Positions 9,044 to 36,997 of a stretch of 64,000 nt of DNA are shown here, piece after piece (the first letter of the stretch is position 1; each line of letters opens with the position of its first letter). The position numbers and the translations under genes are program-made. The notes under the pieces were generated by a model, which searched no databases, was not told where the DNA came from, and saw only the letters and a list, made by a program, of their open reading frames with translations. The stretch lies in sequence record OQ992562.1. One strand, written 5' to 3'.

Positions 9044-11287
9044 ATGAGCGTACATGCCCTAAGAGAACTGTTTAAACACAAAGGCGAAAAGAAATACGAA
9101 GTCTTCTCAATGGAAGATTTCATTGGCCGCCTAGAAAGTGAAATTGGTCTAAATGACAGCATTGTTAGTCAAGGTCGTTCCCTTGTTAGCACCATTTCAC
9201 ATGAAAACTTCGGTACCGTACAAGCTACCGACGTTCAAGATGCTGCTGCAATTTATAACAAAATGCAAATGCTCGTTAACGACTATGGTTTCGAACGAGT
9301 AAGTTCCAGTGATCCTCAAGTACGTGCTCGTGAAGAACGTGTTCGTGAGAACCAGATCACTGCTGCTACCATGGCTGCTATCGCCTGTGCTGATGAAACT
9401 AAATATATCCGTGCACTACGTGGTATTACCAAAGCTAAAGCTTCTAACGAAGATCATGTTAAGGTTGTACAGCATCAGTTCAATGGCCCTGCTGGTGGCA
9501 TTCAAGTATTCGAAAATGGTGTTGGCCTAGAGAACTATAACGAGAAGTCACAGCGTGATTTCCGTGTTGTAACTATTGGTTATAACCTAGCTGCTAGCCG
9601 TCAGGATGAATTCGCTGAGCGTATCTATCCGACCACCGTTATCAACCCGATTGAAGGTGGTGTTGTTCAGGTTCTTCCTTACATCGCTGTAATGAAAGAC
9701 GTTTACCACGAAGTATCCGGCGTTAAGATGGATAACGAAGAAGTGAACATGGTAGAAGCCTATCGTGATCCTTCCATCCTCGACGACGAAAGCATTGCAC
9801 TAATTCCTGCCCTAGATCCGGCTGGTTCCAATGCTGACTTCTTCGTAGACCCGGCTCTTGTTCCTCCGTACACCATCAAGAACGAGCAGAACCTAACTAT
9901 CACTACTGCTCCGCTAAAAGCGAACGTACGTCTTGATCTAATGGGTAACTCCAATGCTAACCTACTCATCCAGCGTGGCATGCTTGAAGTTTCTGACACC
10001 ATTGATCCGGCTGGTCGTCTAAAGAACCTATTCGTTCTACTCGGTGGTAAAGTTGTTAAGTTCAAGGTTGACCGTCTACCTCGCGCTGTGTTCCAGCCCG
10101 ATCTAGTTGGTGATACCCGGAACGCTGTTATCCGTTTCGATAGCGACGATCTAGTTGTTAGTGGCGATACCACTTTCATCGATGGTTCAGCTGACGGTGT
10201 TATCAATGATCTTAAGACCGCTAAACTAAGCCTACGTCTAAGCGTTGGTTTTGGTGGTACAATCAGCCTATCCAAAGGCGATTCTAAGTTTGGTGCTACC
10301 GACACTTACGTCGATAAAGTTCTAAACGAAGATGGTCAGGTAATGGATAATGCTGACCCGGCTGTTAAAGCTATTCTAGATCAGCTAACTGACCTAGCGG
10401 TTATCGGTTTCGAACTAGACACTCGCTTCACCAACACTAACCGTCGTCAGCGTGGTCACCTACTACAGACCCGTGCGCTACAGTTCCGTCATCCGATCCC
10501 GATGCACGCTCCTGTAACTCTACCGATGGACACCATGACCGATGAAGGTCCGGGTGAGGTTGTTAAAGCTCTAACTGTTAACACCAACATCCGTAACAGC
10601 AACAACGCTGTTAAGCGCATGCTTAACTACCTTGCTCAACTACGTGAAGTTGTACACAATGGTTACAACCGTCCGAAGTTTGGTATCATCGAAGGTGCAC
10701 TATCCGCTGTAATGCGTCCGACCTATCGTTACAAAGAACTAGATCTTGAGAAAGTCATCGACACCATCAAGTCTAAAGATCGTTGGGACGACGTTTGCGC
10801 TGCGATCCTAAACTGTGTTAAAGCTGAGCTATTCCCGGCTCACCGTGATTCCAACATTGAAGCTGCCTTCCGTGTTATCTCCGGTAACCAGGATGAAACT
10901 CCGATGTATCTCTTCTGCTCCGACAAAGAGATTGCTAACTATCTAATGACTAAAGGTGACGACCGTACTCTAGGTGCTTATCTCAAGTACGATATCGTTT
11001 CCACCAACAACCAGCTATTCGATGGTAAGCTAGTTGTAATTCCGACCCGCGCAGTACAACAAGAAAACGACATCCTCTCCTGGGGTCAGTTCTTCTACGT
11101 ATCTACTGTTATCGCTGACCTACCGATCACCCGTGGTGGTCACCAGGTTACTCGCGAAATCGCGGCCATTCCGTTCAACCTACACGTCAACAACATTCCG
11201 TTCGCACTAGAGTTCAAGATCACTGGCTTCCAGAAAGTCATGGGCGAAACTCAGTTCAACGGTAAGCTTGCTGATCTTAAGCCGTGA
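9044..11287 (+). CDS. Major capsid protein precursor (phiKZ gp120-like)
   Basis: 747 aa, strong codon bias; S/A/G-X-E protease sites including GLE161-163; AGGA RBS; ends TGA. Confidence 0.95.
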   Translation: MSVHALRELFKHKGEKKYEVFSMEDFIGRLESEIGLNDSIVSQGRSLVSTISHENFGTVQATDVQDAAAIYNKMQMLVNDYGFERVSSSDPQVRAREERVRENQITAATMAAIACADETKYIRALRGITKAKASNEDHVKVVQHQFNGPAGGIQVFENGVGLENYNEKSQRDFRVVTIGYNLAASRQDEFAERIYPTTVINPIEGGVVQVLPYIAVMKDVYHEVSGVKMDNEEVNMVEAYRDPSILDDESIALIPALDPAGSNADFFVDPALVPPYTIKNEQNLTITTAPLKANVRLDLMGNSNANLLIQRGMLEVSDTIDPAGRLKNLFVLLGGKVVKFKVDRLPRAVFQPDLVGDTRNAVIRFDSDDLVVSGDTTFIDGSADGVINDLKTAKLSLRLSVGFGGTISLSKGDSKFGATDTYVDKVLNEDGQVMDNADPAVKAILDQLTDLAVIGFELDTRFTNTNRRQRGHLLQTRALQFRHPIPMHAPVTLPMDTMTDEGPGEVVKALTVNTNIRNSNNAVKRMLNYLAQLREVVHNGYNRPKFGIIEGALSAVMRPTYRYKELDLEKVIDTIKSKDRWDDVCAAILNCVKAELFPAHRDSNIEAAFRVISGNQDETPMYLFCSDKEIANYLMTKGDDRTLGAYLKYDIVSTNNQLFDGKLVVIPTRAVQQENDILSWGQFFYVSTVIADLPITRGGHQVTREIAAIPFNLHVNNIPFALEFKITGFQKVMGETQFNGKLADLKP

Positions 11288-11368
11288 GCTGGAAAGGGTT
11301 ACCGTTATCTAGAAAATGGGACTATCCGTTATTTGGAAGACGGTAATGCCCGGAAGTTAGAAGAGTAA
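11288..11368 (+). other. Putative stop-codon readthrough extension of the capsid protein (26 aa)
   Basis: In frame after TGA: AGKGYRYLENGTIRYLEDGNARKLEE-TAA, upstream of the terminator; matches C-terminus of 36464..36997. Confidence 0.65.
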
Positions 11369-11377
11369 CAGACATAG

Positions 11378-11397
11378 GCCCTCCCTTCGGGGAGGGC
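11378..11397 (+). terminator. Terminator of capsid operon
   Basis: GCCCTCCC-TTCG-GGGAGGGC-TTTATG. Confidence 0.85.
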
Positions 11398-11408
11398 TTT
11401 ATGTTGTA

Positions 11409-11442
11409 TTACATTAAAAAAAGTTTAAGATCTATATTACAG
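11409..11442 (+). promoter_or_regulatory. Early (virion RNAP) promoter
   Basis: A-tract plus TATATTAC core (11433-11440); 33/34 identical to 63117-63150. Confidence 0.85.
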
Positions 11443-11483
11443 TAATGATCATGATCTTCTAATTTAAAAATAGGTTAATCCAA

Positions 11484-11936
11484 ATGAACGTTCAATTATT
11501 TCCAGAAGTCATCGAAAGATGGCAAGATGCCCTAAGGGTATCTCTTATAGAAAAAAATACCATGGTAGATAATAAGATGTCTACCGTAGATGATGATAAA
11601 TACATTAATACTTTCTTTGAAGAATTCCATCCTGTTCAGGATGCCTTTATGCCCAAAGGGCTAGAGGACTTTATTACTGATTATGCCAAGAAAAACATTG
11701 AGGAGATCCTTCAAGAAAAACAGTTTAAGCGGGCCACCGAAAAGTTATATTGTTCGAGTGACCCGCATAAATGGCAGAAATCAAGTAATAAGGAAAAGAG
11801 TGAATCCTTTAAGGGAAGGTCCGTACATCAAACTAAAAAGAGGCTCCCCAACATTGTAGATTTGGAGGCCGTTGTGATTAAGGTAGATTTCAATGGTAAC
11901 ACTAAAAATTGCGGGGCTTACTCAAGTATCAGTTAA
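11484..11936 (+). CDS. Hypothetical early protein (gp121-like)
   Basis: AGGT RBS downstream of early promoter. Confidence 0.65.
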   Translation: MNVQLFPEVIERWQDALRVSLIEKNTMVDNKMSTVDDDKYINTFFEEFHPVQDAFMPKGLEDFITDYAKKNIEEILQEKQFKRATEKLYCSSDPHKWQKSSNKEKSESFKGRSVHQTKKRLPNIVDLEAVVIKVDFNGNTKNCGAYSSIS

Positions 11937-36463: not shown

Positions 36464-36997
36464 ATGCAGGATATCTTTCCGTATGACATGGCATCGAGGA
36501 ATGCGCTAGTAAAACTTGCGCGGGATGATTTAAAAATAAACTTCAAACCAGAAACAGTTACATTTGAAGATATGTTTTTTAGTCCAACCACGATTGAGCC
36601 TGGACGTACATTTATTGAAATGATCGACATCACTACTGACATTAAGTACATGTTAACTTACCGTCGGTTAGATTTTGCTGATCCACGTGCTATTGGTGAA
36701 GGATCTATCCTTAAGATAGTTGGTACTTTAACACCTAAAGCAATTGCTGAAGAAATTAACCGTTCACGAGGTTGGAAGCTTGGTCCAGATGATGTTTCAT
36801 TTGATACAACACCAATCAATGCAACTACGGATGTTGTTCCATACACGATAGTAGCTATGTCGAGTAGCTATGCTTACTATGGTGAATGTAATATACTAAT
36901 CCAACGTATTGATGATACGTCAGATACTATCCGACTATTAGAGAATGGTGCAGCACGTTATCTAGAAAATGGTCAAATCCGTTATCTAGAAAGTTAA
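36464..36997 (+). CDS. Virion structural protein with C-terminal RYLENG repeats (gp143-like)
   Basis: GAGGT RBS; LTYRRLDF family motif; ends TIRLLENGAARYLENGQIRYLES. Confidence 0.75.
   Translation: MQDIFPYDMASRNALVKLARDDLKINFKPETVTFEDMFFSPTTIEPGRTFIEMIDITTDIKYMLTYRRLDFADPRAIGEGSILKIVGTLTPKAIAEEINRSRGWKLGPDDVSFDTTPINATTDVVPYTIVAMSSSYAYYGECNILIQRIDDTSDTIRLLENGAARYLENGQIRYLES

Follow-up and report, generated by a model that had tools for sequence, protein, structure and literature searches.

Recoding where the capsid gene ends is well known, in a few phages, to yield minor capsid isoforms with an extended C-terminus. In the Allolevivirus Q-beta, a leaky and conserved UGA ends the coat gene, and the resulting minor extended coat protein, A1, is present in the virion in a few copies. 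Among double-stranded DNA (dsDNA) phages, gp10B of T7 and Cps-L of the Listeria phages PSA and A118 are likewise minor C-terminally extended capsid isoforms that arise by recoding at the capsid gene end. Fraser et al., in 2006, are said to have described immunoglobulin-like (Ig-like) domains that are added to phage structural proteins by recoding. Herein, we analyzed a 64,000-nucleotide (nt) stretch of sequence record OQ992562.1, called the window below, in which the UGA stop codon of a phiKZ-type major capsid protein gene is followed in frame by 26 open codons encoding a short repeat module. Comparison with related phages makes it very probable, in our judgment, that this UGA undergoes programmed readthrough at low frequency, which would yield a minor extended isoform of the capsid protein.

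The capsid gene and the open stretch after its stop codon

The window comes from a phiKZ-type Pseudomonas jumbo phage, and 47 GenBank phages are at least 99% identical to it over positions 10800-11900. Its capsid gene is 99-100% identical to that of the 47 phiKZ-like phages. The capsid open reading frame (ORF) matches PF25620 (PhiKZ_MCP) over the full length of the profile (positions 1-635 of 635, E = 5e-228), and its product has the same length, 747 amino acids, as the gp120 chain in PDB entry 8y6v. The features at this end of the locus are as follows.

9044-11287, + strand: major capsid protein gene of the gp120 type, 747 amino acids, TGA stop included (ORF list; PF25620; phrog_3231)
11285-11287, + strand: conserved UGA stop, putatively leaky, after the last sense codon CCG; followed by G here and by A in most relatives
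11288-11368, + strand: putative readthrough extension, 26 sense codons at 11288-11365 and a TAA at 11366-11368 (translation, conservation)
11303-11326, + strand: module unit 1, R-Y-L-E-N-G-x-x, which holds a 17-nt stretch identical to part of unit 2 of the gp143 module
11327-11350, + strand: module unit 2, R-Y-L-E-D-G-x-x
11351-11365, + strand: module unit 3, truncated, R-K-L-E-E, with a like ending in relatives and in the gp143 family
11376-11403, + strand: intrinsic-terminator-like hairpin of 10 bp, GC-rich and with a T-run (11376-11399), located 3' of the TAA of the extension

The extension peptide begins with a 5-residue linker and continues with three 8-residue R-x-L-E-x-G units, of which the third is short. 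Arg stands at residues 6, 14, and 22, and the peptide ends one residue past the third L-E. An earlier note on this DNA had described a capsid ORF that ends in CCG TGA and stays open for 26 codons up to a TAA, a terminator after this TAA, and a peptide that has Arg at every eighth residue and ends like the C-terminus of a gp143-like protein. The coordinates and the translation agree with the first of these statements, the hairpin was found downstream of the second stop, and the two peptide sequences agree as described. The same note had also ascribed capsid-type codons to the extension, and in this it was mistaken. In the capsid gene (9044-11284), CTA makes up 70% of the Leu codons and CGT 79% of the Arg codons, and this bias ends abruptly at the stop codon. 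The capsid body uses TTA or TTG for 0 of 63 Leu codons, GGA or GGG for 0 of 49 Gly codons, and CGG for 1 of 42 Arg codons. All five occur in the extension, compared with a single occurrence among the 154 Arg, Leu, and Gly codons of the capsid body. Codons shunned by the capsid body are as expected for a stretch that is rarely translated.

Profile search of the extension gave no Pfam match, hence no Big_2 or other Ig-like domain in it. Its only PHROG match was the C-terminus of the gp143 family (phrog_2935), and this match was weak (E = 0.083). In phiKZ, the first in-frame ATG, GTG, or TTG of the extension comes no earlier than the middle of unit 2. The capsid messenger RNA (mRNA) probably reaches past the extension, judging from the predicted hairpin downstream of the second stop, an equivalent of which was found 3' of the extension in every module-bearing relative. 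At 11369-11410 and at the equivalent positions of the related loci (L001-L038), the extension stop is followed by CATA, the GC-rich hairpin, and TTTATG in nearly all relatives; the TATG after the hairpin may be part of the promoter of the next gene.

The open frame as such says little. At least 26 open codons follow the stop in 36 of the 191 long phiKZ ORFs (19%). Frame openness was therefore rejected as evidence, and the weight must come from relatives. TGA terminates 39 of the same 191 ORFs (20%), indicating that the genetic code is standard.

Conservation of the stop codon, the frame, and the peptide

The capsid 3' regions of PhiPA3, PS119XW, Phabio, 201phi2-1, Psa21, and Noxifer, in which the capsid C-terminus is 61-84% identical to that of the window, were compared together with 32 IMG/VR loci with capsid C-terminus identity down to 59%. 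An in-frame open extension was present in all 23 distinct lineages with a TGA-ended capsid gene (the window, six genera, and IMG/VR contigs; 59-100% identity). The extension comprised 24-30 codons with three units and a hairpin afterwards in 22 of them, and was Ig-like in the remaining one (L026). Frames +1 and +2 of the same region were interrupted by stops in all relatives. The lineages within the clade that had no extension, with 1-8 codons to the next stop, ended the capsid gene with TAA in 7 of 7 cases. The same held for the distant relatives LucasX, Deimos-Minion, DT01, RSL2, and SA002 (capsid identity at most 31%), all five of which had TAA and no motif. The association of TGA with the extension was significant when phylogeny was ignored (Fisher p = 1e-8). 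In a neighbor-joining tree of the capsid protein, TAA lineages fell inside groups of TGA lineages at two or more points, indicating that loss of the tail and replacement of the UGA occurred together more than once. Thus the segment after the capsid stop, for which the earlier note had proposed a test of conservation, keeps its frame, module, and UGA together down to 59% identity of the capsid C-terminus.

Two of the loci compared differ from this common form and are described here for their own sake. At L026:2431-3039 (IMG/VR contig 3300043122_000192), the TGA is followed by 203 in-frame codons, beginning with those for a Big_2 Ig-like domain (E = 4e-9); this stretch could be a decoration domain added by readthrough or else a separate, tightly coupled gene. 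At L038:2386-2412, eight codons follow a TAA-ended capsid gene and end in R-L-E-P, which looks like a decayed remnant of the last unit of the module.

As judged from the codon alignment of the 22 module-bearing extensions, purifying selection acts on the extension peptide. The columns R, E, G, R, E, and G were conserved in 22, 22, 22, 21, 21, and 22 of the 22 sequences, respectively, and each was encoded by two to five synonymous codons, with Arg encoded by both CGN and AGR. The ratio of nonsynonymous to synonymous substitution rates (dN/dS) within the four clades was 0.40, 0.33, 0.48, and 0.29. For the pooled ratio of nonsynonymous to synonymous differences (pN/pS), the alignment read in frame gave 0.61, the two shifted frames gave 0.86 and 1.07, and the last 30 capsid codons gave 0.47. 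Insertions and deletions in the extensions kept the frame, and no stop or frameshift was found in any of the 22.

The close relatives gave a consistent picture. Stops or frameshifts in this segment, which the earlier note had named as evidence against readthrough, did not occur among them: the 96-nt region was ungapped in all 47 phiKZ strains and identical in 36. Among four variant strains that were compared, two of the differences were synonymous, affecting the next-to-last codon of the capsid gene and a codon within the extension. In two of these strains, a change ended the tail one codon early, with the usual L-E ending of the module kept.

The module in gp143 and in other phage proteins

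The module occurs at one further place in the phiKZ genome. A six-frame scan of approximately 563,000 codons, covering the window and, by pieces, the rest of reference phiKZ, found the tandem module at two sites only, the capsid extension and the C-terminus of a gp143-type gene; two loose matches in the same scan were judged to be chance. The second site has the following features.

36464-36997, + strand: gp143-type gene, 177 amino acids, the only other module carrier in the genome (phrog_2935, E = 5e-46)
36932-36994, + strand: C-terminal three-unit R-x-L-E-x-G module of gp143

This ORF was identified as gp143 because it lies directly upstream of the endolysin gene. Its tail and the capsid extension both have three units, and both stop one residue past the third L-E. 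Positions 11303-11319 in unit 1 of the extension are identical over 17 nt to positions 36956-36972 in unit 2 of the gp143 tail, with no other copy in the window and a chance expectation of 0.02; this identity may have arisen by gene conversion between the modules within the lineage of phiKZ. The module of the gp143 family corresponds to positions 157-179 of phrog_2935, where R, E, and G are fixed and the third unit is cut at the protein end. Across the 45 family members, R157, E160, R165, E168, and R173 are invariant and G170 nearly so, and conservation along the sequence is highest in the module. The same pattern of fixed R, E, and G with a truncated third unit is thus present in the extension and in 45 gp143-family members, and the gp143 module was found in all seven genera examined. 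Genomes whose capsid gene has no extension (L100, L129) also keep the gp143 module, which does not support an obligate pairing of the two phiKZ copies, and across seven genera the tails of the capsid protein and of gp143 showed no obvious pattern of covariation. A word-based protein search in which region 135-177, the gp143 tail, served as query returned the query itself only, and a PDB sequence search matched neither gp143 nor the extension.

gp143 is reported as a cytoplasmic, holin-specific lysis regulator that binds the holin gp142 (PMC12894885), and it is non-essential according to transposon sequencing. Its homologue in 201phi2-1, gp228, is annotated as a virion protein from mass spectrometry. 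The AlphaFold2 model of gp143 had a mean predicted local distance difference test (pLDDT) score of 89.9, with 74-84 and short beta-bridges in the C-terminal region that holds the module. The best match of the model was PDB 9xqd chain 0, from the phiKZ baseplate's outer peripheral region (template modeling (TM) scores 0.60/0.69, 18% identity), and the predicted fold of the reported lysis regulator thus resembles that of a baseplate protein. The earlier note had proposed that a minority of capsid subunits carry a tag that also occurs on a tail-type structural protein. The part concerning the tag and readthrough is strongly supported by the comparison of relatives. The description of the second carrier fits less well, since gp143 is reported as a cytoplasmic holin regulator, though it is virion-associated and has a baseplate-like predicted fold.

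Beyond phiKZ, a degenerate DNA pattern for three units matched at least 120 IMG/VR loci (L056-L175). Once low-complexity repeats had been removed, 53 ORFs had the module at the C-terminus, 17 had it at the N-terminus, and 8 had it internally. The carriers were often gpJ-like tail proteins (phrog_1101, PF13550) and also included a tail-spike-like protein and other virion structural proteins. A Pfam scan of ten carrier proteins identified only Phage-tail_3, in the protein body, and no family on the module itself; a full-text search for the motif strings returned no relevant match. From these sequences, the module looks like a widespread discrete terminal element of phage virion proteins, and its most likely role is that of a small element for docking or association. 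The gene after a module carrier often opens with a conserved fiber-like N-terminus. On an unrelated contig (L130, IMG/VR contig 3300048893_000042), an HK97-type capsid gene (phrog_29, L130:5696-6733, - strand) is followed by a gene of 53 amino acids; this small gene has its own GGAGGA ribosome-binding site, and the C-terminus of its product is the same three-unit module. In a protein of 239 amino acids from a representative library (P0031), R-L-L-E-x-G units come in four consecutive blocks of exactly three, which suggests that three units form one structural module.

A bolder reading would join these observations. The module would be an undescribed, widespread terminal docking element, of which readthrough puts a few copies on the capsid surface; with gp143 as its only other carrier in phiKZ, the capsid tag and gp143 would then bind each other or compete for one partner, tethering gp143 to heads, explaining its detection in virions, and coupling the timing of lysis to capsid number. 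We regard this chain as a whole as speculative and rather unlikely.

Proposed readthrough, rival explanations, and known systems

The reading that we prefer builds on the anatomy of the locus, its conservation, the selection on the peptide, and the coupling of the UGA to the extension, as observed above. Most ribosomes would terminate at the UGA and release the capsid protein of 747 residues. An occasional ribosome would decode the UGA with a near-cognate transfer RNA (tRNA) of the host and continue for 26 more codons to the TAA, and the product would be a minor long isoform with the three-unit R-x-L-E-x-G module at its C-terminus. The extension is in frame 0, so no frameshifting is involved.

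The context of the stop codon was examined in the 23 TGA lineages. The UGA was followed by A in 17 of them, by G in 5, by C in 1, and by U in none. Pro was the last capsid residue in 10 lineages, Ala in 8, Gly in 4, and Val in 1; TAA lineages often end in Pro too. Work by Poole et al. in 1995 and Bjornsson et al. in 1996 reportedly identified UGA followed by A or C, and P, A, or G as the last residue, as contexts of poor termination in E. coli, the host here being Pseudomonas. RNAalifold on the aligned extensions found no supported structure (-1.76 kcal/mol, 0 compensatory pairs), and an Rfam search of the extension region found no family near the threshold. The alignment contained no conserved hairpin downstream of the UGA that resembles a selenocysteine insertion sequence (SECIS). 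An ARAGORN search of the window and of every phiKZ piece found no UGA suppressor tRNA in phiKZ, the only tRNAs being those for Thr, Asn (two), Asp, Met, Pro, and Leu.

The solved phiKZ capsid allows the site of such a tail to be predicted. Residues 728-747 form a C-terminal arm at the capsomer center; the six arms of a hexamer form a helix bundle in its middle that leaves a pore of ~9 angstroms, and in pentamers the arms move outward and bind gp244 on the outer surface (PMC11297242). A tail beyond residue 747 would emerge at the capsomer centers, probably on the outside. At approximately 1600 subunits per shell, even a readthrough rate of 0.1-1% would suffice for anything between a few extended subunits and some tens of them.

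Several points count against readthrough as we propose it. The translation of the extension, its frequency, the residue inserted at the UGA, the exposure of the tail on the capsid, and the function of the module are all inferences. We found no RNA element that would stimulate readthrough, and the frequency may therefore be basal only. The capsid model at 3.x-angstrom resolution and its PDB entry end at residue 747, with no extension reported; since a rare flexible tail would vanish in icosahedral averaging, this is weak counter-evidence. The pooled dN/dS values of the extension are moderate (0.3-0.6) and not very low. The Ig-like stretch of L026 has an ATG at extension codon 3 and is possibly a separate gene. 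Finally, at L031:2446-2730 (IMG/VR contig 3300037502_002993), a TAA is followed by 95 in-frame codons that encode a Big_2 domain and then the three-unit module, with no start codon at the head. A module after TAA does not fit simple leakiness of UGA, and this locus stands as an exception.

Could the module instead be made as a separate small peptide, unfused to the capsid protein, from a non-canonical start or by termination and reinitiation? The 53-residue module gene with its own GGAGGA site behind the HK97-type capsid gene of L130 offers a precedent, the early ATG of L026 would suit such a start, and the element GGAAAGGG, found right after the stop in phiKZ and four other genera, resembles a Shine-Dalgarno sequence. 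However, GGAAAGGG is missing from the Psa21-like and Noxifer-like clades, which keep the module, no in-frame start codon is conserved in position across the 22 aligned extensions, and the phiKZ extension offers none before the middle of unit 2. A separate peptide would also leave unexplained why the frame is always that of the capsid gene and why a TGA always precedes it, and we consider this origin unlikely. An untranslated relic, that is, a remnant of a longer capsid C-terminus or of a duplicated 3' end of gp143 that is open by chance, would agree with the frequency of equally long open stretches in phiKZ and with the 17-nt identity to gp143, which could be a recent copy, and L038 may illustrate how a decayed remnant looks. 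But a relic would gather stops and frameshifts, which are absent from the 22 module-bearing extensions; moreover, across four deep clades the frame and six columns have persisted while synonymous codons turned over, dN/dS is 0.29-0.48, and each lineage that lost the extension also switched from TGA to TAA. These data render the relic very unlikely.

The two remaining explanations fare worse still. Conservation might act on the nucleic acid, as a structured RNA in the 3' untranslated region or as three protein-bound DNA repeats, in keeping with the three direct repeats of 24 nt and their location between a highly expressed capsid gene and its terminator. Yet neither RNAalifold nor Rfam supported an RNA structure, and invariant codon positions 1 and 2 (CG., GA., GG.) with a variable position 3 and Arg encoded by CGN or AGR are a coding signature, so that we give this explanation hardly any credence. 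Full or efficient recoding of the UGA, by selenocysteine or a suppressor tRNA, would put the tail on most or all subunits. The UGA is strictly conserved, and the host possesses selenocysteine machinery. Against this stand the lack of a conserved hairpin after the UGA and of a suppressor tRNA in phiKZ, the use of TGA to end 39 of 191 long phiKZ ORFs, the rare codons in the extension, and the cryogenic electron microscopy (cryo-EM) model of the capsid, which goes no further than residue 747 and has the arms packed as a bundle of six helices. Recoding on that scale seems to us highly improbable. Low-frequency readthrough remains the reading that we favor.

phiKZ is the model nucleus-forming jumbo phage, whose capsid is solved to near-atomic resolution and whose virion proteome has been studied repeatedly. 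Full-text literature searches turned up no account of a readthrough form of gp120 or its homologues, and the two phiKZ structure papers are silent on it. If our reading is true, this would be, to our knowledge, the first case in which the capsid gene of a dsDNA phage shows conserved, programmed readthrough of its stop codon. The long isoform would add an unannotated component to the virion, and it would mean that proteomic and structural pipelines based on annotated ORFs miss such products. It would also point to a short repeat module carried at their ends by many tail and head proteins of phages. Existing mass-spectrometry runs of virions and existing cryo-EM particle sets of the capsid allow a direct test of the claim.

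The locus shares features with several known systems and differs from each of them. In crAss-like phages that use code 15, a stop codon in the frame of a structural gene is likewise decoded as sense, but there the recoding is genome-wide and relies on phage suppressor tRNAs (PMC9523058), whereas phiKZ encodes no such tRNA, and TGA serves as the stop of 20% of its long ORFs. In gp143 and gp228 of 201phi2-1 (phrog_2935), the same module follows an ordinary folded protein through conventional translation, and the body of that protein is unrelated to the capsid protein. Decoration with recoded Ig-like domains finds its likeness in L026 and L031, in which a Big_2 domain lies in frame right after the capsid stop, while the phiKZ extension consists of the short repeat module only. 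T7 gp10B and Cps-L arise by -1 or +1 frameshifting at slippery sites, whereas the phiKZ extension lies in frame 0 directly after the UGA. In this respect it is like Q-beta A1: here too, a UGA at the end of the capsid gene is followed by an in-frame open stretch, probably on the same mRNA, and the stop and the frame are conserved together in relatives. Q-beta, however, is a small single-stranded RNA phage that adds a folded domain of ~200 residues, whereas phiKZ is a jumbo phage with a dsDNA genome of 280 kb, and the putative tail in phiKZ and its relatives has 24-30 residues in three 8-residue units.

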